Origin: Tubulanus polymorphus
Lineage: Eukaryota > Animalia > Nemertea
DNA: 64,000 nucleotides
Direction of reading: 5' to 3'
Assembly: GCF_964204645.1 (NCBI RefSeq)
Contig: NC_134030.1
Coordinates: forward strand, 4,196,778-4,260,777
How positions within the stretch are numbered: the first letter of the stretch is position 1; every line of letters begins with the position of its first letter. This document shows, piece after piece, positions 8,229 through 61,824 of the stretch. Made by a program: the position numbers and the translations under genes. A model generated the notes under the pieces. The model searched no databases. It was not told where the DNA came from and was given only the letters and a program-made list of their open reading frames with translations.

Positions 8229-10063
8229 TTATTCCATATAAATAGTATATACAGAACCAACAGCGAACAAGGAATTGTTTTTAAATGTGTAATCTGCACA
8301 TGTATCCACATTGGTGTCCCACATACAGCGACTCCCGATGGTTAAACCCTGGTCTTCCAACTGCCCGATATTGACGAGACAAATAATCTTATACCGCGGG
8401 GCTTTGATATGTTTCACCTTGATCTTGATAGCCTGAAGAAGGTTATAAAAATAAGCATATAACTGATAAAACAAAACAACTACAAAAAAAGAAATCGATT
8501 CGCTCTGACAATGTTCGCTTACGTCTGCTATAGTTTTTGAAAGTTGTTTGCATATTTCGGGATCGTATGGTTCATTTTGTAAATAGTGTTCCATCGTTTC
8601 TCTAATGATCTCCGTTGCGACGGTGTTCGGTACTTTTTTCGTCGGTTCAGTTCGGTAGTTGTTCTCGACGACGCGAACGTTCGACCGCAATCCCGCTTCC
8701 GATGACGGCTCGTCGGCGAACGAAACGGTGCTAACTGACCTGAAAAACAACGTTGTGGAATTTTTTAGAATATTTTCAAATTACATTGATGGTGGAATGT
8801 TCAATGTGAAAGATTTTATCTCACATTTTGCAGAATGCATACAGCCAGGCGCACTTCTTTGTAAGTACGTAGTCTCACAATCTTGAGCTACTGACTTTAT
8901 GCCATATATAAATGTAAAATTATGAAAGTGACCAGAAAAGTTATTACCCCAACTGTTTGATATCCATTGGGTCGAGCATAATGCACATTAGTAGATTTTA
9001 CTTAATCCAATAAAACGTTTGTAAACGTTGCAAAATGCGCTACACAGGAGACCGCAAATGCTATCCATTAACATCAAGAGTGAATCCAGTTTGACCGATG
9101 CTGGTTGCGGCTCTGAACTATTCATGCTAATGTTGTTACGAATTCAAATGAAGCCGTTTGAATTGTCATTAATAGTTTACGCTATAGAAACCGTAACGGA
9201 GGTTAATTTCCCGTTAGCATTCACTCGGTTATTGATGCGACGACGCGGAGGAAAGTGTCGCCATGTGAGGCCATCGCCATAAAATATCGGTATGAATTTT
9301 GTGTACCAGGATTTCGATCGATTGCCTGGTGGTCGCATTGTCGGTTGATAAAGGGACATATTTAATCATTGATGATCGGAATTATCAGACATGATTACAT
9401 GAGACATGAGAGGGTCGTTAGCTAAGATATTTATACCACCTATATTCATCGGTCCAATATAGCAGCGACAATTAGCGTACTGATCAGTACTACTTCTATA
9501 TGACAGGCACCGACGCTTCATTTGGGATAAATTGCAATGCAACGAATGACTGAGCAAACATGTCAAATCTTAATCATTAGAAGAAAGAGTCAACTAGGAA
9601 TAGTTGGTTTTTAACCAATATTATTGATCCCAAACTCACCCACGTTTAGCCGTTTGATGTCGTGGGTGGTGGTTATTATCGCTCGTCTGAGATGACACGT
9701 GACTGTGTCTGCGCCTGCGCAAAAGCATGGCAGCTCGGTCACGTGCCATGACGTCGGAAGTGGAAGTCTTGATAGACGATCGTCTTTCAGCCACTGAAAT
9801 AAAAAGACACGATAAAAGAAAAAGGCGAATGCCTGAAAACTACGAAATGCCTGACGTTTTTCCAACGATTTAGATTTTGTCTTGATAACAAGCATGACCT
9901 AGAATCATGATCTTTCAAAATTATCGACGTTAATTTCAATAGAACCAAAAACAAATGAAAACACGGAAAATATCAGTGCTTATGCATTCATAATTTCTAA
10001 TCATTTTGCTAACTATTACATCACATCACATCACATCACACATGTCGCTGTCTAAAACTTACT
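8229..10063 (-). CDS. TCTEX1D1: Tctex1-domain dynein light chain, TCTEX1D1/DYNLT5-like
   Basis: Exons 9793-9640, 8739-8523, 8432-8229, plus the A of ATG at 10063. ENNYRTEP, YDPEICKQLSKTIAD, PRYKIICLVNIGQ, GSRCMWD and NNSLFAVGSVYTIYME are Tctex-1 domain hallmarks; N-terminal SDVMARDRAAMLLRRRR and SVSTVSFADEP resemble TCTEX1D1. Confidence 0.85.
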
Positions 10064-17240: not shown

Positions 17241-20200
17241 ATGGTTGTCAGCAGTTGTTGCGGTAACCGACGAGAAACCGTTTCTAAAAATGTCAACGGT
17301 GCAGCAGCAAAGAAGCTGATGATACAAGAGGAATCATGCGAAGACCAAACAGAGCACAAAAAAGAAAAATGGGGAAGCGACGTGGAGTTTTTTCTCTCTT
17401 GTGTCGGGTATGGAGTCGGTCTTGGAAATATTTGGCGTTTTCCGTATCTGTGTCTACGGAACGGTGGAGGTAAGCAAAAATAATCTCGACGATCTTCTTT
17501 TCGAAACATAACTGGAAAATGATAGAAACGCTCATACAGATTCACTATTCACGCGATCAATTGAAGTTTTATGTTAAACGTTTGTGATATTGTCATATTT
17601 GCAGGTGCGTTTTTGATCGCATATTTCACGTTCATGATCATTGGAGGAATACCGTTATATTTTCTTGAACTCTGTATCGGTCAATATTCCGGTAAAAGTC
17701 CGATAGCAGCTTTTGAAGCGCTATGTCCGATGGCAGCAGGTAATAATAATTTCTATCGTCTCGGCGTTACTTCTGAATAGGATCTAGAAGGCCTTTCATG
17801 TATATTTGTTGATTTTACTGACCTAACCCGAACTTATGCGTGATCTATTTTCTATAATATATAGGTTTAGGATGGGCAATGCTGATACCCTCAGCAATAT
17901 GTTTAATCTACCTGCATACAATTATGAACTGGATCCTGTATTATTTCGGTATGACATTTACAAGCTGGGAACCGGTTTGGGGGCGCTGTGATAATGTTTG
18001 GAATACCCCGAATTGTGTGATTACCGGGAAGCAGTCGGTCAATCAGACAAACCAAACAGCGATGATGAACGAAACAACCACCAACTACTCACCATCAAAT
18101 ATCAGTTTCGTGTTGTCGAATGAATCATCTCTGAAACCGATGTCATCAGGGGAGGAATTCTGGCAGTACGTTTTCGGAATGATACATTATCCCATCTTAC
18201 AATTTGGAGAGTATAGAAATATATATCAGGTGATATTGATATTTGATAGCCACAACCAACAATTTTCAGGTACAACGTTCTGGAATTAACGGATGGTATT
18301 GGTAATATTGGAGGATTTCGTTGGGAGTTGATAGTCTGTCACATAGCCGCTTGGATAATCGTTTATGCGTGTCTGTGCAAAGGAGTGCAATCTTCTGGGA
18401 AGGTAATTATCATAAGGTGAACGACCACTGTTAAACACTGCGGGAATACCAATCAAAGGCATGAAGTATGTACAATTGTATGTGAAAGGGTCAACTTACA
18501 TTATAATTATAGCAACAAAATGCCTTTTGTTATAAGTTCACATCGACTAAAAATCGTATTCAATGTGTTTTATACATTGATATTTGATGATACTCTTTTT
18601 CAAACCTTTAACTGATTATTCTGGTAATTTGTTTTCTTGTCTGCTATTCAGGTAATATATGTGACCGCAACAGCTCCATTTGTTTGCCTAATCGCCTTAT
18701 TAATAAGAGGTGTTACTCTTCCGGGGGCTCTAGATGGAATCATGTATTTTGTCGTACCCGAATGGAGTAAACTTCTCTCCGTTAAGGTAAATCATTTTCA
18801 TCACAAAACCTATGTTGAAACGTATCTGCTGTTGAATATCTTAGATGTTAAAGAAGAGAACTATATTGTATTATCGTAGATCTGGGCTGAAGCTTGTTTG
18901 CAGATATATTACTCAATCGGTCCAGGTTGGGGTGGTCTGATTACAATGGCAAGCTACAATAGATTCAATCAGAATATCTATCGGTGAGTTATTTTTCTGT
19001 CTCTATTTTCTCGTTATTTCCTTTCTTTCGTGCTGTCAATTTGCATTTTTGTCATTTCTCACAGAGACGCTATAGTCGTTCCTGTTATCACGTGTTTTAC
19101 TAGTTTATTCGCCGGATTCGTTACTTTTTCAATCATCGGTAACCTAGCACACCAGGCTGGTGTTACAGTAAGCGAGGCCCTTACCTCCGGTAAGATATGA
19201 CTCCACATTTACTCTAATTCTTTCGGCTGGGGTTGAAACAAAGCATACCTGCGTCGACGGATCAGGAAGTTAGAAGTCATTCGGTTGGATGATATGAGAA
19301 ATTCGGATAAATTCTATCTGTTGTTGTTATAAACTTTTACCTCTAAAGCGCGTACTGCTTATCATTCTTATTCTAAATACGTTTGTTTATACATTAGGTC
19401 CCGGTCTAGCGTTCATCGTTTTCCCGATGGCCCTTGCCAAAATACCAGGAGCGGCGATCTGGTCGGGTTTATTTTTCATCATGCTAATGACCGTTGGACT
19501 CGATACACAGGTACGTATACGTCTTCTGAGCAATAATATCGCTATTCATAAAAGATCCATGAGATCCGAACGTATGAAGCATTTTTTCATGTTAGCATCA
19601 CGTCAACGAACTACGGAACCTAATTTCATAATTGTAGTTTGTTATTATTTTACAATGTATAGTTTGTAACGATGGAAACGTTGGTCACAACGTTGACGGA
19701 TAAGTACCCGATTTTACGGAAGCGAAAGTCGCTGTTTATATTTTGTATCGTGATCGTGTGTTTCCTGCTTGGTCTTCTGTTCTCCAGTCGAGTGAGTATT
19801 CAATATTCCTGTTTTATGCTCTTACGCCTTGCTGAGTCTAGATAGAATATAGGGAGCTCCGGGAGTTACAGGGTGAAAAATGAATATTCTTCTTTTTTTT
19901 CGTTGGATTTCCAGTCGAACGAAATATTCGTTTCTTTACTTATTTTTCACCATGTCACCTCCGGGGCTCCGTAAGAATACGCCGTTAACTACATTTTGAA
20001 AACAGATGATCGCTTCTTTGTAACTTTTCTTTTCTATATACCCGAACGACTTTTTCAAACACATCCGAAATGAATTTTTAGACAAAATACACTTTCAACA
20101 GGCATTTTGCTTGAAGTGCTGCACCCGTAACCTGCATGGAAAATATGTGATTTTTTCTTAGAGCGGAATGTATTGGTTTCAACTATTCGATTGGTATGTG

Positions 20201-21234
20201 GCGATGGTAGCGTTATTACTAGTATCAGCATTGGAATGTATAGTTGTGACTTATATTTACGGTACGCTTCGTTTGGCCATGCGCTCACAATTCGCCTCTT
20301 CACTCGAACTCGCAGAGCCAGGACATGTTTGGATACATATGTCACAAACAACGATGAGAACTACATGTTACTAGAAAAACAACCACGCATAATTCTGAAT
20401 AAGCGATTAGTTAATTCGTTGCGTCATTTTCATTTATACAAATATCTCAGTCAACTATGAATAAATGAATTACTTAACATTTTACGAATTTTTTCACATA
20501 CATATAGTAATACGTACTTTATCTAAAAACAACAGCAAGTATTAAAGATTTCAAATCGGATTGAGCGCTAATTATGGTTAAAGCGTCACTTCGATAGCTA
20601 CGTATACTTGCTGGTTAAGTATTAACGAGTAGATTAATTTAACACTATTGCAGGAATAAGCAGGGTGTATAAAGATATAGAAGCTATGATTGGATACCGT
20701 CCGTCGTGTTTCATGAAGGTATTATGGTGTTCCGTTACTCCTCTCGTTACTGTGGTGAGTGTATTCGTAGATGTCTCCTGCAAATCGTTACTCCACCAAT
20801 GATTCACTTTTGAATATTCATCATGAGATTTTTGTTTTCATTATACAATCCAGGCTATGCTGATCTATGTTATGGTACAGCAGGTTCCACCCTACTATGG
20901 TGACTATTTCTACCCTGATTGGGCTGTTGGTATTGGCTGGTTGATCGCCACAATTTCAACCGTACCCATACCATACTTCATTTGTAGAGAGCTTTATCGC
21001 AATACGGGAACACTGAAAGAGGTAATTTAGGTTTCACACTTTGCGAGATATCTGTCAATGAATGTTCACGTAATTCCTACCAAGACTTCACTTTTACACT
21101 TGGGTATTTTATCTATGTTTTTCAAATAGCGATTCCTGAAAGGGCTCAAATCGACTGAAGATTGGGTACCTGCAAATGAACAGAACAAAGCGGATTCTCA
21201 AATACCGATGGTGAATTTAAAACCCGGAGTATAG
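17241..21234 (+). CDS. SLC6 (NSS) Na+/Cl- dependent transporter, amino-acid subfamily-like, array copy 1, 13 exons
   Basis: [88 protein letters not shown]; GT-AG introns; stop TAG at 21232-21234. Confidence 0.92.
19850..19973. mobile_element. MITE-like element in SLC6 copy 1 intron
   Basis: Imperfect ~30-bp inverted ends TAGGGAGCTCCGGGAGTTACAGGGTGAAAAAT / ATTTTTCACCATGTCACCTCCGGGGCTCCGTA; not seen in the equivalent introns of the other copies. Confidence 0.55.
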
Positions 21235-22943
21235 AGTTCGCTATATCCTGATGCGTATTTTAACATTGATCTTTCGACGAAAGAACTAACTATTCGATAG
21301 CAGAATCGATTTACAAATGATGTATATTACATCAGTAATTTGAAAGACTGAGCTTTGGACTAGCTTTGTGTAATGTTATCAACCTGATAATATCATTATG
21401 CAATATGGATACTGCTGATTTGTGACAGCCTAGATTAAACCATGGACGTGTAATCTCCCGATTCAAACGTCCACGATCTGAAACTGTGGACCCATTTTTC
21501 CGGGTCGAAGCTACACCCCAAGTAACTAGCGCTGATTATTCAACGATTTCTTTTGTGTACGAGAAATGCAGCCTCCGTCCAGCTTCTAGAGATCTCATGT
21601 TATATAGTGAGACTATTTTCATAGTTTTATGTACCTACATCGCATCGTGGGATGAATTTTATTTTGTATTTTATCATTATTATCAATATCAATATTATTA
21701 CAATACCATATCAAATATATTATTTGAGGTTGTTGCATTCGAAAAATATACATTTTGAGCTTTATCATATCATTGGTTCATTTATTGGTGCTATTTATTC
21801 TGATCCTATTCTCGAACAATGGTCAACGTCTGAAATCCGGAACAGATCGAACCAGTAACGATAGAACTATGCGCTCGGAATACCAAAACTGGACTGACTT
21901 CATTTTACACAATTTTACATACATTGGAAACAATACGAGTAGAAACAAGGGAATTGATGTACAAACAAAGGTGATGAGTAATGACACGACAAGAGAGACG
22001 AACAATAATCAACACGCAGAACTGTCTCAAAGGAACATAGAGTAATTACATACAGCCATTTAAAAATTAAGAGAATATGAATATAGATTATACAAGAATT
22101 AGTGAACTTTGGCTTTGCTATACTATATGAGGATCCACTTCGGCGACGTCTATATTATAAGAAGATGTACACATGACACAGACACAAAGAGGGATTCCTT
22201 ATATGATAAATGATTTTATTTTAGAATTTGAGATGATGATTATCATCAGTATTCAAGACCCAGCAGCTTATTCTTTGCGGACTGGGAAGCGAGTGGCCCC
22301 TGGTTCGAAACCACCTTTGGCGTTGACGTTAGCGTTTTAGATATATACGATTTAGATCAGAGTCTTATTGCGTCGTTGACTATCACACCAGACTACCAAT
22401 TGACATGATATTCGAAACCATGAAGTGGTTGCGTATATCGGCGAGCGGGTCGATTTGAAAGATAATTCCCATAGGTGGAATTTATTGGCAAATTATCAGA
22501 TTGGCAAATTATCAGGTCATTTTCAAACAAACTCATCACTTATCATGTGCCATAAGTAAACAAATCCAATAACTTTGATATCATGAAATTTGGTGGAGTA
22601 GATCATATACAATTTTCTGTCGTCACTTATTGATATTAAAGCTACATTAAAAGGTTATCATTACCTAGGTCATCTATATCCTATTCGAAGATTAATTCAC
22701 ATTCTTCAAACTTCTGTCGATAGGTGTTGATTTTGATGATATACGTAAACAACCGCATGTGTCACAGCTTTGGTAAGTAATATATTCACTAATGCTTATT
22801 ATTATAACATGATCATCATATATTCAAATTCCATGCATTTCGATTATGCACAGGTGTTTTGAAACAACTGCGTACACTATAGATATACTCATGTGCATCA
22901 GATGTAGGACCGATGATCGTGTGATTATTGACAAATCAAGATT

Positions 22944-25900
22944 ATGGTTGTCCGTAATTGCTGCGGGGCTCGACCAGATATCGTTGCCGATAATGTCGAC
23001 GAACCAGGAGCGGCAAGTGAGCTAACGATACATAATGACGCATCTAACGAAAAACAAACAGAGCATAAAAAAGAAAAATGGGGAAGCGACGTGGAGTTTT
23101 TTCTCTCTTGTGTCGGGTATGGAGTCGGTCTAGGGAATATTTGGCGTTTTCCGTACCTTTGTCTACGGAACGGCGGAGGTAAGCATTTCAGTAAAATACC
23201 ACATATTATCATCTATTGACATTCAAAACGACATCGAGATAATTCATAGATTACACAATCGTATAGATTACAACAATGTGGGCTGAATAAAAGAGCCATA
23301 AAACAATGAAGTGGCTCAACGTAATTAGGCAGCGGTAGGTTTCATTTTGGTTCTTCCGAATCGCACAAACTATCGGGTTAATTCTAGTATAGAATAGAAT
23401 ATGGCGGCTGATTCGGACCACAAAATCGCCAATTGATTTGAAGTAAATTAAAGTAATCTTCATCATGCCGCTCGTGAAACAACTAGTAGATTTCACCTAA
23501 AACACTGAAATCATCTTTTTAGTCGAGTAACAACTTTTAGGTAATTTCATCAGGGTCTTTAGTCTGGAATATATCTTACTCGGACCAATTTCTTTTTTTT
23601 TGTTTAGTTTAAAGTTGGTTTCTTTATCAAAATTGTTTTAAGGACCTAAAACGTTTGTTTGAGCGTTAGTGTTCCAAATCAGCCGCCATAGTATACAGCC
23701 AGTTCGCATGGAGCACATCGGCTGGTATAGAAATTATGTCCCTCCCGTATCACCCGATGTTAAATTGTGATCAATGATAACATAATATCTTAAGGATCGT
23801 GCAAGGATTCATTTCTATATAAACCTATTCAATTGTATCATTTGCAGGTGCATTTTTGATCGCATATTTCACGTTCATGGTCATAGGAGGAATACCGTTA
23901 TATTTTCTTGAACTCTGCATCGGTCAATATTCCGGTAAAAGTCCGATAGCAGCTTTTGAAGCGTTATGTCCGTTGGCAGCTGGTAAGAATCAGTCGGAAA
24001 AATAGAATCAGCGTTCTTCACTTCTATCTTCATCATAAGTATTATATTATATATTTGTACGCTGTCTCTATGGGAGAAATTGCTACTCACAGAACGTATA
24101 CATTAGAACTTGCCATTACAGGTATAGGATGGGCAATGCTCATACCATCAGTAATATGTCTGATCTACCTCCATACAATTATGAACTGGATCCTGTATTA
24201 TTTTGGTATGACATTTACTAGTTGGGATCCGGTTTGGGGGCGCTGTGATAACGCTTGGAATACCCCGAATTGTGTGGTTACCGGGCAGCAGTCGGTCAAT
24301 CAGACAAACCAAACAGCGATGATGAACGAAACAACCACCAACTACTCACCATCAAATATCAGTTTCGTGTCGTCGAATGAATCATCTCTGAAACCGATGT
24401 CATCAGGGGAGGAATTCTGGCAGTATGTGGTCAGAAAGACTAGTCATTCAAATAGAAAAACTTCTAAAAGATATAGTTTCATTGATGTATTGGACTGCAC
24501 CTTATAATTTTCAGGTACAACGTTCTGGAATTAACTGATGGTATTGGTAATTTTGGTGGATTTCGTTGGGAGCTGATAGTCTGTCACGTGGCTGCTTGGT
24601 TAATTGTTTACCTATGCATGTGCAAAGGAGTAAAATCTTCGGGAAAGGTATGTCTTCCTGTGATATCTGATAAAAATTCGGTCAATAAATCTGAAATGTA
24701 GGCCTAAGGTAAATGTGAAGAGATACGTGTTATATCCACACCGTAACGCTGAGGTTATAGCTTCCAATATCTGCGGTTCAAAATTATGGGAATATTCATA
24801 TGCTTATACTTTTAGAATTGATCAAGTTGTTCCATATCCTCTATTAAGGTAATTTGTTTTCTTGTATTCAGGTAATTTATGTGACGGCAACAGCTCCATT
24901 TGTTTGCCTGATCGCCTTATTAATAAGAGGTGTTACTCTTCCGGGGTCTCTAGATGGAATCTTGTATTTTGTGGTACCCGAATGGAGTAAACTTCTATCT
25001 GTTAAGGTAACTTAATCATTATCGAAACAAATAGAGAAAAATAACTGCTTTTAAATATCTTACATAAGTATATATTGTATTATCGTAGATCTGGGCTGAA
25101 GCTTGTTTGCAGATATATTACTCAATCGGTCCAGGTTGGGGTGGTCTGATTACAATGGCAAGCTACAATAGATTCAATCAGAATATCTATCGGTGAGTTG
25201 TTTTTCAGTCTCTATTTTCTCGTTATTTCCTTTCTTTCGTGCTGTCAATTTGCATTTTTGTCATTTCTCACAGAGACGCTATAGTCGTTCCAGTGATAAC
25301 GTGTTTTACTAGTTTATTCGCCGGATTCGTTACTTTTTCAATCATCGGTAACCTAGCACACCAGGCTGGTGTTACAGTAAGCGAGGCCCTTACCTCCGGT
25401 AAGGTCATTTCGATCTACATTTGATGAACAATTTTGGTATAGGTCATGTAAAAAATTTGCCCATTTGAACACAGGTCCCGGTCTGGCGTTCATCGTTTTT
25501 CCGATGGCCCTTGCCAAAATACCAGGAGCGGCGATCTGGTCGGGTTTATTTTTCATCATGCTGATGACAATTGGTCTCGATACACAGGTACGTCGTATAA
25601 ATACATATGTGGTGAAGAAATAAACGCAAAACAACAATTGGAGATTTGATAATGCTGTAAATCATTATCTATCCAGTGATCACCATAATCAATGCTTTAT
25701 CAAGCCTGATTCCCTTTTTTGATTCCAGTTTGTCACGATGGAAACGTTTATCACAGCTTTGATGGATAAGTACACGATTCTACGGAAGCGAAAGTCATTG
25801 TTCATTTTGTTTAACGTCACTTTCTGTTTTCTATGTGGTTTATTATTCTGTTGTCGGGTATGTACATATGTGATTTCATTGTGCCTCTGTTTATTTTCTT

Positions 25901-27279
25901 GCTTTCTCCTTCGTTTGCTATGGGGTCCTATTATGATTTTTTTACGTCGACAAAAAGTCATAATCATGGCTACGTAAATACTTATATATTTTTCTGTCAA
26001 AAACGTTTCATTTTTCGTTCTTATTATGTAGAGCGGGATGTACTGGTTTCAACTATTTGACTGGTACGTGGCTATAGTTGCATTGCTTCTAGTATCAGCA
26101 CTGGAATGTATAGTAGCGACTTATATTTACGGTTAGTCCTTTAATTCGTCGAAACGCGATATTTTGCAGAGTAAAATTAAAATATCACGGCGTATAATAT
26201 ATACGTAACTTAATGTGTTGCTGCTATAGTTTGATAGCGTTTACTTAACCCGCTGGTAATGCGATATCCTTCCACAGCAGGCATTCGAACCTGATGACAC
26301 CGAAGACACCTGCCACGGCAGCGATGCCATCGGGTTCGACACCCTGATGGGGGAGATTATAATGTGAATTTTCTGATATGATATCTAGGTGTTAACAGAT
26401 TGTATAAAGATATAGAAGCTATGATTGGATATCGTCCGTCGTGTTTCATGAAAGCACTGTGGTGCTCCATCACTCCTATTATCACTACAGTAAGCTGATC
26501 TTGTTCATGATGAATCGATTGATTTGCTTTAAGTCCATCGCACCCGCCATCTATACAAGGCGTCTGAAAAGCCAAGGCTAAAAAATGGATACCTTGTTTC
26601 TCCGCTCTGCTGAGCTTAAAAGTTGACCCGGCTGGCCGCCTAGTATCTCCCCTGTACATTACGTTTTTTTTTTAAATCGTGATAAATTTTACAACAACTG
26701 GCCCGGCAGCCATAGAAATGATTACAAATTGTATTATATTTAACAAAAATGGCCCGGCCGCTGCAGAGAAACAAGGTATCATTTTTGTTTAGCCTAGGCG
26801 GATTTTCAATGTTTCTAGCTAATGAAAGCATTAAGGCATATATTCGTATTTGTCTATTTTAGGTTATGCTTATATATGTTATGGTGCAGCAAGTTCTGCC
26901 TTATTACGGAGACTATTTCTACCCTGATTGGGCTGTTGGTATTGGCTGGTTGATCGCCACAATTTCAGCCGTTCCCATTCCCTACTTCATTTGTAAAGAG
27001 CTTTATTGTAATACTGGAACACTGAAAGAGGTAAACAAGAATTAAGCAGATATTGACTTGTACATAAATATGATTAGATAAATGGTTTGCGCAGTTTTTT
27101 TTACAAGAATTTTTGTATATTTTACGTAGCGATTCAGGAGAAGTTTAAAGCCGACTGAATCTTGGGTGGCTGCAACATTACAGAATAAAGAGGATGCTTT
27201 ACTACCGATGGAGGATTTGAAACCAGGAGCCAATTACATAGTCGAGGCATTTAGTCACGATCAGACTCTTTCATGTTGA
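22944..27279 (+). CDS. SLC6 transporter, array copy 2, 13 exons
   Basis: Same exon series and motifs as copy 1; extended C-terminus ...[22 protein letters not shown] at 27277-27279. Confidence 0.92.
23400..23690. mobile_element. MITE-like element in SLC6 copy 2 intron 1
   Basis: 22-bp inverted ends TATGGCGGCTGATTCGGACCAC / GTGTTCCAAATCAGCCGCCATA (2 mismatches). Confidence 0.6.
26571..26799. mobile_element. MITE-like element in SLC6 copy 2 intron 11
   Basis: ~35-bp inverted ends GCCAAGGCTAAAAAATGGATACCTTGTTTCTC / GAGAAACAAGGTATCATTTTTGTTTAGCCTAGGC; internal CCCGGC subrepeats. Confidence 0.6.
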
Positions 27280-28274
27280 TTCTATGATAAAAACCGGTTC
27301 ATTTGGACTTTTGATTCCCCCTCCTGGAACGGGTATAGAATATAAATTGTCGTCATAAAACCTCATATATACATGACATGTTTAACACTGACGAGAGACA
27401 ATATTATACTGACCCAGACATATAACATGTAATGGAGAAATCTAAATCATTACGGAATGTCGAATAAATCACTACTACTCGTTGATTATGAATATTCAAA
27501 TTAGCAAGGTGGATGTTAGGGGGCTATTTTGTAAGACATAGATTCGTCGGACGAGTTTCAGTTATCAGTTGATATTTCATATCATTTTAGACTGCAGAGG
27601 GTGGTAGTTACACCCGACATATTTCTACTTGTAATCAATGCATTAGTTTAATTATTTGGGTTTTACGTGTTTTCAAATCTAAAGATATACAAGAATTTTA
27701 CTCGTGCTTAAGTAGGATACCCGTCACAAGGAAATGATAATTTTTTTTCAATGATTCATCAGCTAATTGATCGTTATCCTTGTTGTGTTCCCTTGTGCAA
27801 AAGAGGTTTCCATTTTCTATTGTATATAATCACACATTCACGATGCTATTGTATATATATCTTTTTATCTTGAAAATTGGATAATTATTCCCCATTAACT
27901 TTGATTTGATTTGATACTTTGGTGTCTGGGATTTTTTTCACTTTGAAATCGGAAATCGAAGTTATAAGGGCTTATATTGGCCAAAATGGGGATACTGTAT
28001 ATATTAGGACATTTCAACTTTTCACTCATCAGAAGAAAGTGTAGAGACCCGCTAACGAAGCATTTCTGGAACGAAGTACACAGCGTTGAAGATCATGATA
28101 TTATAGGCCTGGATAAAATGAATGGTGGATGGACGTGCAGAAATATGTCGAAAATTTGTGGATAGACAATTAGCTGAAGACATAAGCCTTGGAATAAACA
28201 TATAGATCAAATAACCCAATTAGTGTCCCTAGTTTCCCCTTCAGGATCTTGGCAACTGTTTTGTATTTTGTATC

Positions 28275-28620
28275 CTTAAGCCGGGCGTAGGTCGGCCTTG
28301 CGACGCGACGCGATCGTCGCGTTGCGTCACAAGTGACCGCACAAGTCGGTTGCGATGCGGTTGTCAGCAACTGTGTGCGACTAGTTGCTGCCAGGGCCCG
28401 GTTTCACGAACAGGGATTAAGTCCGTAATTCGAATTAATTCTCTAATTCGAATCAAATGTTAATCCCCGTTCGTGAAACCGGGCCCAGTCGCAACAGCGC
28501 GTAGGTCGGTTGCGACGGTCGCGTCGCGTTGCAGAAAGTAGAACATGTGCGACTCATTGCGACTGGCATCGCTGGCAGTCGCAACCCGTCGCTGGCAGTC
28601 GCTAGGTAGCGTAGGTCGAG
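28275..28620. mobile_element. GC-rich non-autonomous DNA element (TCGC/GCGA-rich) carrying a nested MITE
   Basis: Abrupt GC-rich block of GTCGC/GCGAC and CGTAGGTCG subrepeats between SLC6 copies 2 and 3, interrupted at 28395-28485. Confidence 0.55.
28395..28485. mobile_element. 91-bp palindromic MITE with CAG target-site duplication (PIF/Harbinger-like)
   Basis: Perfect 17-bp TIR GGCCCGGTTTCACGAAC/GTTCGTGAAACCGGGCC (26 bp with one mismatch); CAG at 28392-28394 and 28486-28488. Confidence 0.8.
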
Positions 28621-28636
28621 TTCATAGTGACCTTGA

Positions 28637-28638
<2 letters not shown>

Positions 28639-28673
<35 letters not shown>
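28639..28673. repeat. (AT)n microsatellite
   Basis: About 17 perfect AT units. Confidence 0.95.
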
Positions 28674-28677
<4 letters not shown>

Positions 28678-29069
28678 AATGATCGCACTAATTTGATGAT
28701 ACTTTGTTTAGATCGAAGTACATTTTGGAATTTCGCTTCCGGGTCCGGCAAGCGAGGCCTTTTTCGGCCGCTTATTGGATACATCTAAATTTGGCAATAG
28801 CTATCAGGTTTTAATATCATATGTTGCATATGTTCTAACATTAACAAAGATGTTCTGTCAACAGAAAATTATTTATAAAAAACCAATCGATAAGCTGAAA
28901 AGAATAAAAAAAACCTGTTTGAACAGCTTGAACGAGCTTGTTACATTGATATAGAGCGTATACTCTAGCGTATGTTGTCGTACGCACGACTGACTGCTCC
29001 AGTCAAGTTTTAGTCGATACCACTTCACGTTCATCGAGCCATCCGTAGGTATGTCGTGAAACCGGCGAA

Positions 29070-32000
29070 ATGGTTTTCAGTAATTGTTGCGGAACTCGAC
29101 GAGATGTCGCCTCGAATAATGTCGACGACTCAGCAGCGACAAAGGAGCTAACGATACATAATGATGCATCTGACGAAAAACAAACAGAGCATAAAAAAGA
29201 AAAATGGGGAAGCGACGTGGAGTTTTTTCTCTCTTGTGTCGGGTATGGAGTCGGTCTTGGGAATATTTGGCGTTTTCCGTACCTGTGTCTACGGAACGGT
29301 GGAGGTAAGCATAATAAGCACCTACAAATATACGCTGATGCATCTATATTGCATCATTCAATGACTGATCTGAATGTTTTATTCAATATTGAAAGATTTC
29401 GCAGAAATGATACAAATCTGGTTGATATCTAAAACTCTATTGCTTTAATTTCTGATTACACTGAACTCTGGAATCGAATTCATACGTAGCCTAACTAACT
29501 GCATGCAGAATGTATGGCCACTGTTACGAGAAAAATATCAGGGTTTTTTAGCATCAATTGAGAAATAATAAAATGAGTCATTTTTGCTGAGTAATTACAG
29601 TATGCTCTAATCACCCACATCTGTTGATACTGGTAGATACCAAAACATACCAAGGGGCGTTCGCTTATGTACCAAATGTAGCTTAAACAAAATTCAGTAT
29701 CCCTGTATGATAAATATACAGGGATACTGGGGTTAGTTAGCCAATGATACTGGTTTTGTTCATTCTCAATTGCGACAAATCCCTGTCACAATTGGTGACG
29801 AATTGAATAATGTTTTTGAAAATTTATGTATAATTTGGAGCAATGAGGAATAATCTAATCTAATCCGCATGCATGGATTTTCCACTTGTAGAAATTTACA
29901 TCAGCTAAAAACGGCTGCATGCAAAATAGGCAGCGCAGTCGTAGCCCTTCTCTATCATCGAGCCGACTACTATATGTAGTAACATTTTTTCTTACTCCGG
30001 TTTTTGTCTGGTTTTTGTGTTTGACGAAAATTTTGAAGGCCGTGTAATTTTCCATTGCATTCAATGCAGGTCGTGAATTATTCTAAACGATCGCTTATTC
30101 ATAGTGTAGACACTATTCATAATGAAACGCGACATGTTACCGCACATTAATCATGATCGGAATAATCGTTTTGAATCTGTTTTATGTAAAAAATTACTAA
30201 ACTTTTTTCTAGTTTTGTATGAAGCTCTTTTTGTAAGTGATTTAATTCATTCAATTCCTTCGAATGATCCTTTTTTTCGTGAGCGTTTGCTTAAACTTAA
30301 TAAAAAGAAAAACGACCGATATTTTTGTCATTCATTCATTTTCTCATTCATGAATTCTAGGTGCATTTGTGATCGCCTATTTTACGTTTATGATCATAAG
30401 TGGAATACCGTTATATTTGCTTGAACTATGCGTTGGACAATATTCCGGTAAAAGCCCAATAGCCGCTTTTGAAGCGCTATGTCCAATATCAGCGGGTAAG
30501 ATTTACAGTATATATTATTAACATACAGATTGTAAATTAAACACAAAATGCCAAAACCGTCCAAGCTTTCACCAGGTCTGTATCATTACAGGTTTAGGAT
30601 GGGCAATGTTGATACCCTCAGCATTCTGTCTAGTCTATCTCAACAGCATCATGAACTGGATTCTGTATTATTTTGGTATGACATTCGTTAGTTGGGATCC
30701 GGTTTGGGGGCGCTGTGATAACGCTTGGAATACCCCGAATTGTGTGGTTACCGGGCAGCAGTCGGTCAATCACACAAACCAAACAGCGCTGATGAACGAA
30801 ACAACCACCAACTACTCACCATCAAATATCAGTTTCGTGTCGTCGAATGAATCATCTCTGAAAGCGATGTCATCAGGGGAGGAGTTTTGGCAGTACGTGG
30901 TTAGAATGAAAAAACGTATTGTTTGGATAGAAACACTTCCAAGTGATATCTTCACGGTTCCATAAGTATTTGATAGCAACTACTTATCATTTTCAGGTAC
31001 AACGTTCTGGAATTAACGGATGGAATTGGTAATTTTGGTGGATTTCGTTGGGAGTTGATAGTCTGTCACTTGGCTGCCTGGTTTATTGTTTACGTATGCC
31101 TTTGCAGAGGAGTGAAATCTTCAGGAAAGGTCAATAATATATGGTGAACATTGTAATAACTATTCTCAGCTCAGGAGAACTAATTGAAGATCTGAAATAT
31201 ATATGATGCTTTTAAGATATCAGGGGCTAATTATAATCCATTTAGAACTGCTCACATTCTCGATTATTCAGGTAATATACGTGACGGCGACAGCTCCATA
31301 TGTTTGCCTGGTCGCCTTATTAATAAGAGGTGTTACTCTTCCGGGGGCTGTAGATGGAATCATGTATTACATCGTACCTGACTGGAGTAAACTTCTCTCC
31401 GTCAAGGTAAATCATTATCATTAATTGAAATAGAGCAAATACGTCTGCTGTTAGATATTTAAGAAGAGAACTATATTGTATTATCGTAGATCTGGGCTGA
31501 AGCTTGTTTGCAGATATATTACTCAATCGGTCCAGGTTGGGGTGGTCTGATTACAATGGCAAGCTACAATAGGTTCAACAATAATATATATCGGTGAGTC
31601 TTATTTTTAAACCAAAAACGATGTCTCAAAATCTGACTAATTCATGATGGTTATTTTCAGAGACGCTATAGTTATACCAGTGCTGACATGTTTTACTAGC
31701 TTCTTCGCCGGGTTCGTCACATTTTCTATTATCGGTCATCTAGCACACCAGGCTGGTGTAACGGTTAGTGAGGCCCTTACCTCCGGTAAGACACAAGCTA
31801 CATTACCTTTTACTAACATGCATATTTCATTCCGTACTTAAAATAACTAATTTTACTTACTATTGCAGGTCCCGGCCTGGCATTCATTGTTTTTCCGATG
31901 GCCATCTCCAAAATACCAGGAGCGCCAATTTGGTCGGGTTTATTTTTCTTAATGTTGTTGACAGTCGGGCTTGATACACAGGTAAATGCCAGAATTCTTA

Positions 32001-33751
32001 GAACGTCTTTTACTACTTCAGAATAGAACTAAAAAGTGTTTGAATAAATTCGCTTTCTCGTAAGAATGATAATTAGTTTTCAATATGGGCCGAGGAATGA
32101 AAATCCAGCCCTAAAAAGGTGATGAAGATAAACTTGTTTTATTTGTGGTTGTGGTAGCGTCTATTCACAAAGATCATTGTTATTTAAATATATAGTTCGT
32201 TATGATGGAAACATTGGTCACGGCTTTGATGGATAAGTACACGATTTTACGGAAGCGAAAGTCGTTGTTCATATTGTTTATCGTCGTTGTATGTGTCCTG
32301 GTCGGCCTTTTGTTCTGTTGTCGGGTAAGTGTATAAAGTCAGATATGAAAAGTCCATTTTCTCCTCGACTAACGCGTCGTTAAGTGAAAGACTGTTAGAC
32401 CCAGACCAAGATGACGCAACGTTGGTGGCATAACGTGTGTGTAGCAGTGCTGAAAGCAATTAACGCCAAATAACGACATTTTCCAAATGTATTGTATTGA
32501 AATTTATTGTATTTAAATTCTATGTAATGAAATTTAGGACCATTATGGCCTATTTCAATTAACAAAACTTAGAATTTATACTTTTTCTCTCCCAGGGAGG
32601 CATGTATTGGTTTCAACTATTGGACTGGTATGCTGGCATGTTCACGTTACTGATAGTATCTACTTTAGAGTGTGTAGTTGTATCATATATATACGGTATG
32701 ATATGTATCCGGTGAATTCAATTTTTTTCTAGATATTAGAATTGCACGTACATTTATCAATTAGCATTGGCATGAGTTACGTTATTTATTAGCCTGTGAT
32801 TAGCGCGTTGAACAATTTTAAATCAAAATACACAAAATCAACAGGATTGTAGAGAACCGAATGACAAACTGGCCTATTCTCTAAACCACAGATACAGTAT
32901 TTCCTGGATTATAGATGAATAATCACGCGTCTGTAGTTTCGAGAATATAGGTCTGGCCCTGGTCCTATGTTATGTTGGGTTTGATTATAGCCTACAGAGT
33001 GAAAATGACAACATATTTCACTGGATGCCTGCGAGACAAAACTGTTTCGAAAATTCTAGAAACATGTACAAATGAAAAAGTACGATCTGATCTATAGGAA
33101 TGAACAGAATGTATGACGATATAGAAGCTATGATTGGATATCGTCCTTCATGTTTTATGAAAGCACTGTGGTGTTCGATCACTCCAATTATAACTACAGT
33201 AAGTGCGTTTTGAGTACCGGCTTTCGGACTCTTCTAGCATAACAATTGAAATACATATTGATTCCTAATCCATTCAAATGACATATTTTCACTTGCATCC
33301 GTTGTAGGTTATGCTGGTATATGTTATAGTGCAGCAAGTTCCAGCCTACTATGGTGACTATTTCTACCCGGATTGGGCTGTTGGTATTGGCTGGTTTATC
33401 GCTACAATTTCAACCGTTCCTATTCTGCTCTTCTTTTGTAAAGAACTTTACAACAACACCGGCTCATTGATAGAGGTAAATATTATCTAAATGGAAGGTT
33501 TTTGCTATAAGGGTCCTTGCAACAAAGAATATACATGATTAATACTACTCCCATCCCAACCACCACCCCCCCCCTCACTCCACATCTAAAAACATCCTAT
33601 TCTTAAATGCTCTTAATTTCGTGTTGATTTGATTTATTCTGCGCAGAGATTCAAGAATGGTTTAAAGCCGACTGAAGCTTGGGCAGCAGCAACTCTACAG
33701 AATAAAGAAGAAACTTTACTACCGATGTCGGACTTAAAAATAGGAGTATAA
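29070..33751 (+). CDS. SLC6 transporter, array copy 3, 13 exons
   Basis: Same exon series and motifs; stop TAA at 33749-33751. Confidence 0.92.
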
Positions 33752-34565
33752 CGCTATCTAAACTACCGGTTATCTAGGCTAACAAACTGCTGAACTAATT
33801 GTAATAACTAAAATCAATAGATACATCGAACTACCTTTTGAATAAAATGAATAATTTGATTTTTATGCGAAAAAGAATTTCTTGTGTTCTCTTTTATATT
33901 GGATGAAGGACAATTTAACGAAGACAGAGAAGAAAAAGCTAGCTTTTCCATGATACATTATAACTTCCGCTTACTCTATGACGTGATATGACATTGTGCT
34001 CACGGGTTACAGGGATGTACCACCATATATTATGTACGATTATCAATATTTGACTGAAATTATACTGATTTCGCTGATAGTTTTTTTATATTTAGAAATG
34101 CAGCTGAAGTCCCGTTTAACGGATCAACTTAAAAAAGAAAAATTATGGAAATTAATTGAAATATTTAATCACGTTCTTCTGCCAAAAGGGTAGATTGGGA
34201 GTAGACGGCATTTTATAGTGGGCCCTAAATTGTAATGATTCTTATTGCATTGTATAAAAATAGTTCAATTATACCATTGAAGGAACGTTTCCATTCAAGA
34301 CCTGCTTGGTATATTATCCCTTCATTAAGTCATTATATCCAGTAAGCTAATAACTCGTTTAATTCGAATCGGTATTTTTTATTCACTTAGTATGGACTAG
34401 AAATCCTGTCTACGCTATGTTATTTCTATCCAAATGAGAGAACATAATTCGGATTTCGTTTAATTCGGTAAAAATTTCCCAGTCCCAGGTGATACGAATT
34501 GAGCGAATCTACTGTGCGTGTGTATGATTCTACGAGTCAGTTCATTAAACAGCTGAACAGCGAAT

Positions 34566-37500
34566 ATGGTTGTCAGAAGCTGTTGTGGCGTTCAGCAAGA
34601 AATCGCTTCGGAAAATGTCAACGGTTCAGCAGGAAAGGAGTTGATAGTACAAAATGAATCGTGCGACAGAGGAAAAACAGAGCATAAAAAAGAGAAATGG
34701 GGAAGCGACGTGGAGTTTTTTCTCTCTTGTCTCGGGTATGGAGTCGGTCTTGGGAATATTTGGCGTTTTCCGTACCTGTGTCTACGGAACGGCGGAGGTA
34801 AGCAAAATGAATATATATATAGTTGGCCCCGTTGATTGAAAGATTTTATCTATTTTATTTCTAACATTACTCGGCGAATTTAACCATAAAAATGGTCGGA
34901 TACCGATTTCTTATAAATTTTGATATAGATCGCTGAATTTGGAGTTAACTCATCGTAATTTCATTATAATGTAGGTGCGTTTTTGATCGCATATTTCACG
35001 TTCATGGTCATTGGAGGAATACCGTTATATTTTCTTGAACTATGTATTGGTCAATATTCCGGTAAAGGTCCGATAGCAGCTTTTGAAGCGCTGTGTCCGA
35101 TGGCTGCTGGTAAGAACTGAGTCATATTTAGTGTTTTTTTGGCCATGGTCAGATATTCAATTAGTTCATTATTACAGGTTTAGGATGGGCAATGTTGATA
35201 CCCTCAGCATTCTGTCTAGTTTATCTCAACAGCATCATGAACTGGATTCTGTATTATTTTGGTATGACATTTACTAGCTGGGATCCGGTTTGGGGGCGCT
35301 GTGATAACGTTTGGAATACCCCGAATTGTGTGGTTACCGGGCAGCAGTCGGTCAATCAGACAAACCAAACAGCGATGATGAACGAAACAACCACCAACTA
35401 CTCACCATCAAATATCAGTTTCGTGTCGTCGAATGAATCATCTTCGAAACCGATGTCATCAGGGGAGGAGTTTTGGCAGTACGTTGTCAGAAAATATTCG
35501 CTGTCTCATTTGCAATTTGTAGAATATATGAAACATCTTAAGAGTTTTATCGGTATTTCGTATCCATATCGCACTGGTTTCAGGTACAACGTTCTAGAAT
35601 TAACTGATGGAATTGGTAATTTTGGTGGATTTCGTTGGGAGTTGATCGTCTGTCACGTGGCTGCTTGGTTTATTGTTTATGTGTGCATGTGCAAAGGAGT
35701 AAAATCTTCTGGAAAGGTAATTTGCTTATAAAAATTAGAAGCCTACATTCTAGTTAGTTAAACTATGTAGACGTCACTGTTTGTTGAAGTCAAAATCATT
35801 GAAAAAATGGAAAATCATCACAAAATTACTGCCATATTTTGCCAAAAATGAAATTTCATTACGAGGATTCTTACGAAATGATCAATTTCAGCGATTTTGC
35901 ATGGTTTAGAGTTTTCGATTCAGGTTATTTATGTGACGGCGACCGCTCCATATGTTTGCCTGATCGCCTTATTAATAAGAGGTGTTACTCTTCCGGGGGC
36001 TCTAGATGGAATCATGTATTACATCGTACCTGACTGGAGTAAACTTCTCTCCGTCAAGGTAAATCATTATCATTAATAGAAATAGAGCAAATACGTCTGC
36101 TGTTAAATGTTAAAGAAGAGAACTATATTGTATCGTAGATCTGGGCTGAAGCATGTTTGCAGATATATTACTCAATCGGTCCAGGTTTCGGTGGTCTGAT
36201 TACAATGGCGAGCTACAATAGATTCAATCAGAATATCTATCGGCGAGTAGTTTTTTCTATTTTAATATATTCCCCACATCACTTACATTTTACTAAAATG
36301 TTCGTTACATTTTACAGAGACGCTATAGTTATACCAGTGCTGACTTGTCTAACTAGTTTTTTCGCCGGGTTCGTCACATTTTCTATTATCGGTCATCTAG
36401 CACACCAGGCTGGTGTAACGGTTAGTGAGGCCATTACTTCTGGTAAGTTTTTCTATTATGCATCGTTAAGACGAATGCTTTACTAACTCAGTCGCCGACT
36501 TGCATTTAGCAGAATGCAAATATACGGCTTCTGTTGAATACAATTTAGAGAGCTCTTCAACCAATTGTTTAGATTTCTTCACCGCAAAAATTGTATTGCT
36601 TTTTATGTGGGGCGTATACCGTGCGAAATATGCTTACATGCTTGACATTGTGTTGACATTTTGCTTATACATTAGGTCCCGGTCTGGCGTTCATTGTTTT
36701 CCCGATGGCCATCTCCAAAATACCAGGAGCGGCGATCTGGTCGGGTTTATTTTTCATCATGCTGATAACCGTTGGACTCGATACGCAGGTAGATTGTGTC
36801 CTCGGACTGAGTAGCATGTTTAGAAAAGGAATAACGGATTCGTGATAGCTCTGTCAAAGGCGGCCTTCTCTAGTAAAAGGGGTCTAATAAATCTGCATTT
36901 TTTAAGTCAACGTTTAACAAGACCTACGATATGTTCTAGTATCCATCAATACGCATTCGTTTGATCAGGATTCCAAGACAAAAAAACTTCATCTAAACCA
37001 GAATTTGAACAATAGTGAAATGATTAAAAACACATTTTTTTAAGCCTGTATGCCTGCCATCTGATTAATCAGCTGTTCAACTTTTTCATGTGATATGTTT
37101 GCAATTATTATTTTTCAATATTTAGTTTGTCATTATGGAAACTCTGATCACGGCTTTGACGGACAAGTACAAGATTTTAGGGAAGCGAAAATCGCTGTTT
37201 ATTCTGGTCACCGTCATCGTATGTTTCCTGATCGGTTTTCTATTCTGTTGTCGGGTAGGGATTCTAAGATCTTCATGTATGAGATACTTCATTTAAAGGT
37301 TTAAAAAAGATATTCAGGAAATGTAATATGTCCTTTAATCTGCAACCCGTAGAGCGTTCACCATTCTAGCATGGAGTCTTTTTGAAAGCACATTCATTGA
37401 TTAAAACATCTAATATTTGGTGGTCGTAGTTGATTCCCAGTTATCATCAATGTCCTCTACGATCACAAATTGAGAGAATGACGATGAAGTATTGAATGTC

Positions 37501-38501
37501 TTAATCGAAAAAGATTGGTGCCAAAATTTATAAAGAGATCTATTTCTTTAAATGGGAAAAATGAAAATAAAATTTTTTTTCGCAGTTTGAATATTTTCCA
37601 CACGAAACCATCAAAACATTGCAGAATTCCGGGAGGCGCTTCCGTACGCCAATATATTAAAAAGGACCTTAGTTGACATGCTTCGTAAAATACATATTTT
37701 CTCTTAGGGAGGCATGTATTGGTTTCAATTATTAGATTGGTACACTGGTATGTTCACTTTACTCATTGTATCTGCGGCAGAAAGCATAGTTGTAGCACAT
37801 ATATACGGTAAGCCTGTTTGGCTAACTAGTTATAATTTCCACCGTGATTGGTCAAATTTTGCTCGAACAATTTTGAAATTAGCCTCAAAGGAGAGAATGA
37901 CCGTATATGTAAATCACATTATCTAAAATTGCAGGAATGAACAGGATGTATACAGATATAGAAGCTATGATTGGATACCGTCCGTCGTGTTTCATGAAGG
38001 TATTGTGGTGTTCCGTTACTCCTATTGTTACCGTGGTAAGTTTGAAATTTTCAAAGGGATTTGATGTTTCAACTGCATATGAATGTTTAATTAATATATC
38101 GGCATATATTTTGCTAGGCTGTGCTGGTATATGTTATAGTACAGCAAGTACCAGCCTACTATGGTGACTATTTCTACCCTGATTGGGCTGTTGGTATTGG
38201 CTGGTTTATCGCTACAATTTCAACCGTTCCCATACCATACTTCATTTGTAAAGAGCTTTATCGCAATACCGGAACACTGAAAGAGGTAAGACAGTTTAGA
38301 ATCACAATTAATTTTTGGAATTCCGGACCTTGTCCTCTTTTGGCTCAACTGATATCTCAATATTCTGCATCGTTTTTCCAGAGATTCAAGTATGGGATAA
38401 AACCGACTGAAGCTTGGGTAGCAGCAACTAACCCGATTGAAGACGATACTCTCCATTTATCGATGGTAGAAATGAAAACGATACCGGTTTCGAGCAGCTG
38501 A
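34566..38501 (+). CDS. SLC6 transporter, array copy 4, 13 exons (one GC-AG intron)
   Basis: Same exon series and motifs; intron 6 (36243-36317) starts GCGAGT where paralogues have GTGAGT; stop TGA ends at 38501. Confidence 0.9.
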
Positions 38502-38850
38502 TAAAAAACAGCCGCATCGACGTTTCGTATAAATATATAGATATTTATACATGTTGCTTTATTCAGCAAATGATATAATCATTCAAATAAATTATCTCAA
38601 AGTATTAACAAAAATCATTTAGTCATTTCTACAGAGGTGAGCCTGTCCAAAGATGGATAAAATGTAGCGGCATTCCGACAAAGAAAAGGTTTTTACCTGT
38701 GTACAAAAAGATAATATCGCATGTGCCGTTGGGGACCTCAGTCTTCTTCTTCTTCTTCCGATATCTGTCAACATCAACTGGTTGATGAAACACAGTGTAT
38801 AGGTGTGCGCAAATAAATATATACAAACATTACTAATAAATTTAGTATTA

Positions 38851-39075
<225 letters not shown>

Positions 39076-39411: not shown

Positions 39412-40492
39412 ATGAATATTCTTGCGGATAGCTTCAAAAAAGCTATAAACATATTGTCACTGAAGAGAGACGCGGACGGCTCCTCAATAGAAACAGATTC
39501 CGAATTAAATCCATATAAACGAGATGTGAGACGATATGAAGGCATTCTTCAAGATGAAAATGCATCTTTCAAAGATAAAATTGATGCAATTCGACAAATC
39601 GGACATAACGCCTACACCGGTATTATTCACTATAATGAAATTATGAACTGTTAGATACATTAATTGAAATGATAAAAATGCAGTGCTTAGTGATTATCTA
39701 TATAAACTATTTAACACACAGACCTACTATACTTCATTTTGTAAAAACATATTTAAGGTGGTACGGAAGTGAGCAAGTTCGTTGGGGTGCAGGTTCTGAA
39801 TGATTTGCTGAATATCATGAAAGAAGGTGACCCTCCGCTTGGCAACGGCATCAAAATACAAGTCATCAAATCGCTATCGGAGATTCTTCATCAGTGTAAG
39901 GACAATCAAGAAAAACTTCGCAAGAACGCCGGCGCTTTGGAATGTCTGATCGACGCTGTCGGAGATCGAGGCAATAAGAAAATGTGTCGCTGGGCGTGTT
40001 ACACGTTAGCCACGATAATGGCTGATAACGTTCCGCTGATGAGGGATATCCTGCGTACGTAGAGTTTAGTTCGGTTATTGCCTGATTTATAGGATAAAGT
40101 TATATATCCTGAATTCAGTGATACCGATTTCTTTTGCGCAAATTCATTACTGACTAATTGTATTCGCAGAACTGGAAAATGTGGAATTAAAGTTGCGTAA
40201 TGCGGCACTATTACCAGAAGAAGAATGGGACGGATGGCCGGAAAACTACGCCGAAGTTATGCTACGTCTATTGGGGCTTCCACTACCGACCAAACTGTCA
40301 GCCAGCACTGAAGAACTACTGCGACAAAAAGAAGCCATGATTCGAGAAGTTCGTTCGAATATTCGAGCAGGTCGTAGCGGCGAGGACACTGACGGCAAAG
40401 TCTCTATTCCGAAAACCGCTGCTGAAGCTTCTGCCGGTGCGACCCTGCGCACACTGACACCAACCAAAGGCATGAATCTACTTCATTTGTAA
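39412..40492 (+). CDS. ARMH2: Armadillo-like helical domain protein, ARMH2-like, 3 coding exons
   Basis: Exons 39412-39619, 39758-40054, 40170-40492 (phase 1/1). QIGHNAYTGG, IKIQVIKSL, RWACYTLATIMADN and EEWDGWPENYAEVMLRLLG parallel ARMH2 motifs as I recall them (KIGLLAFTGG, FWTCYVLSVM, ENWSGWTENFAEVL). Confidence 0.72.
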
Positions 40493-61763: not shown

Positions 61764-61824
61764 TATCTATCATTATTATGGGTTTGCCGTCTGAAATGCG
61801 GGAATTCTTACGCGTCTCGTGAAC

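Follow-up and report, generated by a model that had tools for sequence, protein, structure and literature searches.

Substitutions at the Na1 and substrate-carboxylate corner of four tandem glycine-transporter-like SLC6 genes in the ribbon worm Tubulanus polymorphus

A tyrosine of the third transmembrane helix (TM3) and an asparagine of the first sodium site (Na1) are central to models of how ion and substrate binding are coupled to gate closure in the neurotransmitter:sodium symporter (NSS, or SLC6) family. In LeuT the hydroxyl of Tyr108, the substrate carboxylate and Na1 form a network that closes the outer pathway, and both LeuT Y108F and the corresponding SERT Y176L bind ligand with transport abolished (10.1101/283176). 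Mutation of LeuT A22 and N286 shifts the affinity for Na+ and K+, and N286Q is transport-dead (PMC10945697). A natural departure at these two positions is seen in the lepidopteran transporters KAAT1 and CAATCH1, in which Asp338 stands at LeuT N286 and Ser68 at A22; both substitutions have been connected with an altered cation selectivity, in the form of K+ use, and with a weak dependence on Cl- (PMC8310414). In the literature searches no paper came up on SLC6 genes of nemerteans or on a TM3 Tyr lost in nature. Described here is a stretch of 64,000 nucleotides (the window, C6:4196778-4260777) from the palaeonemertean ribbon worm Tubulanus polymorphus, of which the forward strand, at window positions 17241-38501, was found by open reading frame (ORF) listing and motif scans to carry four head-to-tail, intron-containing SLC6 genes. 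In all four the TM3 Tyr is replaced by Leu and the Na1 Asn of TM7 by Thr. Single mutations at either position kill transport, and the natural genes that carry Leu and Thr together are kept by selection.

The four genes are listed below in window coordinates; the homology searches were run with single exons or with the stored proteins P0001, P0151 and P0270.

17241-21234, + strand: SLC6 copy 1, 625 aa, stop codon 21232-21234; exons mapped by homology to copy 3, with Pfam SNF matches; the protein equals P0270 residues 1-619 plus six C-terminal residues
22944-27279, + strand: SLC6 copy 2, 642 aa, stop codon 27277-27279; P0270 residues 622-1261; mapped by homology
29070-33751, + strand: SLC6 copy 3, 627 aa, stop codon 33749-33751; exact protein-to-genome match of P0151 (XP_074653462), with GT-AG introns
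34566-38501, + strand: SLC6 copy 4, 631 aa, stop codon 38499-38501; mapped by homology

Each gene has 13 exons, of which exons 2-12 are equal in length across the four copies (exon 3 is 301 nucleotides in each). Exon borders are AG/GT and introns GT-AG throughout the four genes, the one exception being a GC donor at 36243-36244, which belongs to intron 6 of copy 4. No in-frame stop and no frameshift is present in the 4 x 13 exons, in agreement with the intact reading frames that a first-pass annotation of the DNA had claimed for all four copies. Of the NCBI models, P0270 (XP_074652896, 1261 aa, 'uncharacterized protein') joins copies 1 and 2 into one read-through product, and P0001 (XP_074652897, 470 aa) cuts copy 4 off after exon 9. 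The Pfam family PF00209 (SNF) is matched by eight exon ORFs, five of them above the 27-bit cut-off and together collinear over profile positions 1-521, and P0001 and P0151 carry precomputed PF00209 matches. The best solved-structure matches of P0001 are GlyT1 (5.6e-122, 411 bits) and GlyT2 (6.3e-118, 398 bits), over approximately TM1-TM9.

Positions were compared through the residue equivalences between LeuT, GAT1, SERT and DAT (PMC2194793). TM3 reads IYLHTIMNW in copies 1 (17906-17932) and 2 (24163-24189) and VYLNSIMNW in copies 3 (30633-30659) and 4 (35219-35245). TM7 reads VITCFTS in copies 1 (19084-19104) and 2 (25293-25313), VLTCFTS in copy 3 (31680-31700) and VLTCLTS in copy 4 (36337-36357), and all four copies have GYGVGLGN in TM1 and QIYYS in TM6. 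The substituted codons are as follows.

17912-17914, + strand: Leu codon (CTG) of copy 1 at the LeuT Tyr108/GAT1 Tyr140/SERT Tyr176 position
24169-24171, 30639-30641 and 35225-35227, + strand: homologous Leu codons (CTC) of copies 2, 3 and 4
19090-19092, + strand: Thr codon (ACG) of copy 1 at the LeuT Asn286 (Na1) position
25299-25301 (ACG), 31686-31688 (ACA) and 36343-36345 (ACT), + strand: homologous Thr codons
17412-17414, + strand: Gly codon of copy 1 at the LeuT Ala22 (Na1 backbone ligand) position; homologues at 23121-23123, 29247-29249 and 34740-34742
18907-18909, + strand: Tyr codon of copy 1 at the LeuT Phe252 position; homologues at 25116-25118, 31517-31519 and 36166-36168

HMMER alignments to the solved human GlyT1 and GlyT2 chains have no gaps across TM3 and set the Leu against the second Tyr of the YYN motif; in the same alignments the TM7 Asn is faced by Thr and the TM1 Ala by Gly, and the QIFYS of GlyT1 is faced by QIYYS. 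Because the alignment is gap-free and the invariant Trp still lies six residues downstream, the remaining TM3 Tyr is the equivalent of LeuT Tyr107, not of Tyr108. A register shift that would place this Tyr at the Tyr108 position was considered and is ruled out by the gap-free alignment, the fixed spacing to the Trp and the constant length of exon 3. The TM3 and TM7 motifs and the GYGVGLGN of TM1 named in the first-pass annotation are thus all present, with the Leu and Thr codons of copy 1 where it had put them, and the alignment agrees with its assignment of the Leu to Tyr108. It had also set QIYYS against a canonical QIFFS, which is right in part: the motif is there and the Tyr at F252 is new, but a Tyr at F253 is normal, QIFYS being the norm (GlyT1 and 129 of 152 relatives).

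In these alignments the changes cluster on the Na1/carboxylate corner, with the second sodium site (Na2), the Arg-Asp gate, the chloride site and most of the intracellular gate intact. The motif G.GN.WRFPY of the unwound region of TM1, including the gate Arg, is present in all four copies, as is the gate Asp of TM10, within LLDWY or LFDWY. All four have GLDT in the Na2 region of TM8, where, at the level of sequence, most relatives likewise have Asp and Thr/Ser. The chloride-site residues (TM2 Tyr, TM6 Gln and TM7 Ser) are kept, so that the alignment and motif tables confirm what had been proposed for this site, for GLDT and for the TM1 Arg/TM10 Asp gate; the TM6 Ser and the hinge motifs of TM6 and TM8 are likewise retained. 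Among the Na1 side-chain ligands, N27 and a Ser equivalent to T254 are present and N286 is Thr in all four copies, so the full set is not. The pocket is small and GlyT-like, with Gly at LeuT S256 in every copy and, at F259, Trp in copies 1-3 and Phe in copy 4.

Two overlapping sets of 152 relatives, obtained by exhaustive and word searches, were used for comparison, one of proteins of at least 400 aa and the other of proteins of 540-830 aa. The LeuT Tyr108 position is Tyr in 126 of 142 aligned residues of the former set and in 142 of 151 of the latter. Among the tabulated relatives only the window copies have Leu at this position, and only they have Gly at A22; Tyr at F252 is likewise confined to them among the 152 relatives. 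The TM3 Tyr is also retained in all 23 other SLC6 genes sampled from the T. polymorphus genome. At the Asn286 position 124 relatives have Asn, the others having Cys, Thr, Asp, Gly, Ser, Met or Val. Elsewhere in T. polymorphus, two SLC6 genes at C1:19.97-19.98 Mb (L016, L027, L034, L035) have Cys for the TM7 Asn (VVCCCSS), and the single TM3 exon found there (L035) retains its Tyr. The Logan transcripts P0165, P0167, P0169, P0175 and P0273 form a GlyT-like clade without both Na1 side-chain ligands, TM1 Asn27 having become Ala and the TM7 Asn Cys or Val, and two members have Ser for the TM3 Tyr. A further, intron-less transcript of 616 aa (L051, a contig of Logan SRR25726911; P0166) carries YYH in TM3 and Thr in place of the TM7 Asn. 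It lies on a long branch near Lineus relatives, and it may have come to this state independently or be a remote orthologue of the clade with Thr.

Trees of 111 and 46 rows, among which there are no vertebrate GlyTs, place the window genes in a nemertean-specific expansion. The four copies stand on a stem of 0.83 substitutions per site within a clade, supported at 99, that also holds P0152, P0153 and P0154, a second T. polymorphus tandem array at C7:18.555-18.590 Mb whose genes were studied as stored proteins. The TM7 Thr is common to all seven Tubulanus genes of this clade, and at the TM3 position P0154 retains Tyr while P0152 and P0153 carry Thr; canonical residues are found in the next sisters (P0156, P0159 and P0161) and in the Lineus longissimus relatives. 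Given that seven genes share the Thr while the next sisters are canonical, the change from Asn to Thr, which arose on the stem of the seven-gene clade, preceded the others; Tyr to Leu, Ala to Gly and Phe252 to Tyr followed on the long stem of the window subclade. Of the positions conserved to at least 85% in relatives, just seven were altered along that stem, among them Tyr to Leu (position 140), Phe to Tyr (position 323) and Arg to Lys at LeuT R5, together with a Pro beside the chloride-site Tyr of TM2 that became Ala and a Tyr of extracellular loop 4 that became Phe. The Thr had been presented as a mark of the four window genes; it is found in each of them but is not special to them, since the three C7 paralogues share it.

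The four copies are maintained under purifying selection and are not decaying. Pairwise ratios of non-synonymous to synonymous divergence (dN/dS; Nei-Gojobori, exons 2-12, summed exon by exon) are 0.14-0.17 at a dS of 0.33-0.58, and the variant residues are held through synonymous change, the Leu by CTG in copy 1 and CTC in copies 2-4 and the Thr by three codons (ACG, ACA and ACT). A reading as pseudogenes is rejected on this synonymous variation at the variant codons, together with the intact exons and the low dN/dS, and one as assembly duplicates on the dS between the copies. Exon by exon (exons 2-12, 17605-38285), dS forms a mosaic: it is 0 in exon 6 between copies 1 and 2, 0.06-0.3 in exon 3 and about 1 in exons 9-11. 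Such a mosaic is a sign that the duplicates are fairly old and that gene conversion has acted on their 5' half, and the pattern points to conversion tracts that span the part bearing the variant residues.

The same two residues appear to have been lost repeatedly, and in company. By parsimony on a quick tree of the 152 GlyT-like relatives, a rough test, the TM7 Asn was lost at least seven times and the TM3 Tyr at least six times. Near-invariance of the TM7 Asn is, as far as these alignments go, a property only of the characterised members and not of the spiralian GlyT-like proteins. Branches without the Asn, which make up 24% of the tree length, bear five of the six Tyr losses (binomial tail 0.004); an independent-pairs test of Asn against Tyr loss had too few pairs for significance. 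Loss of the Tyr is nearly confined to lineages without the Asn, a pattern that gives independent comparative support to the proposed latch between Tyr108, the substrate carboxylate and Na1 and that fits the published form of that latch. From the same pattern a non-standard stoichiometry can be predicted for particular uncharacterised SLC6 proteins of invertebrates.

The explanation to which the evidence leans, by a modest degree, is that the four copies are functional carriers with a remodelled Na1/carboxylate site, an intact Na2 site and intact gates, and altered coupling or anchoring. That they are functional tandem NSS genes of the glycine-transporter-like group forms part of this whole explanation and is held with the same restrained confidence. 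The seven-gene Tubulanus clade first exchanged the TM7 Na1 ligand Asn for Thr, the window subclade next exchanged the TM3 Tyr for Leu, the TM1 Na1 Ala for Gly and the Phe252 equivalent of TM6 for Tyr, and since then purifying selection has acted on the four copies, accompanied by some gene conversion. The proteins would remain alternating-access carriers driven through Na2, with the canonical Tyr108-carboxylate-Na1 latch given up or re-engineered, a change that would alter cation affinity or stoichiometry and the hold on the acidic end of the substrate. The four copies probably use changed ion coupling or cargo. Given the Gly at S256 and, in copies 1-3, the Trp at F259, a very small, glycine-sized cargo is predicted. 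The pocket lining differs between the copies, in the residue after the Leu (His or Asn), at F259 (Trp or Phe) and at I359 (Thr, Thr, Met and Ile in copies 1-4), which suggests diversified specificity. An expanded SLC6 clade with a rebuilt Na1 and substrate-carboxylate region, as proposed at the outset from the DNA, is borne out by the alignments, the retained sites, the tree and the purifying selection; the non-standard substrate, different ion coupling, channel or transceptor that were suggested along with it stay at the level of inference.

Five observations weigh against remodelled, working carriers. The Thr hydroxyl could still ligate Na1, so that Na1 may persist; the engineered SERT Y176L is transport-dead (10.1101/283176), and the Leu here may mean that there is no transport; each of the four copies has Lys for the N-terminal gate Arg on the cytoplasmic side (LeuT R5); a word search with P0151 residues 100-260 for transcript fragments or orthologues of 88-280 aa across exon junctions gave no match; and three of the five coupled Tyr and Asn losses share one branch each, so that either may have come first, on a parsimony reconstruction from a quick tree. 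It is possible, at clearly lower odds than the remodelled carrier, that the four proteins are canonical transporters in which the changes compensate one another, with the Thr coordinating Na1 and the TM6 Tyr at Phe252 replacing the lost TM3 hydroxyl, a glycine-like cargo, ordinary Na+/Cl- coupling and a neutral re-wiring. The change at Phe252 is unique to exactly the clade without the TM3 Tyr, and F252 is among the residues of the LeuT leucine site (PMC2194793); the remaining ion-site and gate residues, the GlyT-like Gly/Trp pocket and the strong purifying selection would also be expected of such proteins. However, P0152 and P0153 went from Tyr to Thr without the TM6 change, and in other lineages Tyr loss tracks Asn loss without any change in TM6.

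Purifying selection on the Na2 site, the gates and the TM6 and TM8 hinge motifs in four copies, as expected for a working alternating-access cycle, and a diversification of the pocket lining that resembles that of substrate-specialised carriers make it improbable that the genes encode non-transporting derivatives which keep the fold as a substrate-gated leak or channel, a transceptor or a binding protein. This possibility draws on the mutants SERT Y176L and LeuT Y108F, which bind but do not transport (10.1101/283176), on LeuT N286Q, which is transport-dead (PMC10945697), on KAAT1 D338G and D338C, which are non-functional (PMC8310414), and on the Lys that replaces the cytoplasmic gate Arg. The blank transcript-fragment search and the imperfect NCBI models, with copies 1 and 2 fused and copy 4 truncated, would also suit duplicates that died recently or were never expressed, their odd residues being a result of relaxed constraint. 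A dead-gene reading of the four copies is unlikely and is given hardly any weight, since there are no stops or frameshifts in the 4 x 13 exons, splice sites are conserved, dN/dS is 0.14-0.17 with a dS that reaches 0.58 overall and about 1 in exons 9-11, and all copies share the variant residues despite synonymous changes.

A wider proposal may be made with considerable reserve: that the four copies, with the other spiralian GlyT-like lineages that lost first the Asn and then the Tyr, exemplify a natural mode of SLC6 coupling that dispenses with both the Na1 site and the latch. Such a mode, doubtful as it is, could take the form of Na2-only drive, of a different cation or of a carboxylate-free cargo. 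If true, evolution would repeatedly have found a second way of closing the outer gate in the NSS fold. The paralogue series from Asn with Tyr, through Thr with Tyr and Thr with Thr, to Thr with Leu is ready-made for testing which residues are needed and what each is needed for.

The sequence flanking the array has ORFs with matches to Tctex-1 (8229-8750, - strand), a secretin-family seven-transmembrane receptor (12868-15015, - strand), an ASC/DEG-ENaC channel (42284-43177, - strand) and an LRR-Ig-FN3 protein (61819-63936, + strand), and one with an ataxin-10-like domain below the Pfam cut-off (39769-40062, + strand); none has an evident functional link with the SLC6 genes. A (TAA)40 microsatellite at 38849-38967, just 3' of copy 4, is the source of a spurious minus-strand poly-Ile ORF.

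Among known systems, vertebrate GlyT1 (SLC6A9) and GlyT2 (SLC6A5) resemble the window copies in G.GN.WRFPY, QI.YS, Gly at S256, Trp at F259 (copies 1-3), C.TS in TM7 and the Arg/Asp gate. They differ in that the window copies have Leu for the TM3 Tyr, Thr for the TM7 Asn, Gly for the TM1 Ala and Tyr for Phe252, and in that TM8 has GLDT in the window copies and GLGT in GlyT1. The nearest relatives, P0152, P0153 and P0154 of the same genome (59-62% identity), are likewise tandem and have the same TM7 Thr, but they keep the TM1 Ala and Phe252, and their TM3 residue is Tyr (P0154) or Thr (P0152 and P0153), never Leu. The spiralian GlyT-like clade of annelid, flatworm and mollusc proteins (for example P0247, P0203, P0230, P0250 and P0267) is uncharacterised and has Cys, Ser, Asp, Gly or Val at N286. 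Some members (P0169, P0175 and P0236) are also without the TM3 Tyr and one subgroup has in addition lost the TM1 Asn27; nevertheless this is a separate clade with an independent loss, and it has no TM3 Leu, TM1 Gly or Tyr at F252.

KAAT1 and CAATCH1 are the only characterised SLC6 members found with a natural substitution at N286, and like the window copies they have one at A22 too. They belong, however, to another subfamily, have Asp and not Thr at N286, and keep the TM3 Tyr, provided that KAAT1 Tyr147 is, as we take it to be, the residue at the LeuT Tyr108 position. A paper on a KAAT1 Y147F mutant is named in the reference list of PMC8310414. The engineered LeuT Y108F, SERT Y176L and LeuT N286Q are altered at the same positions as the window copies; in contrast to these transport-dead single mutants, the window proteins bear several co-occurring changes that have been kept by selection.

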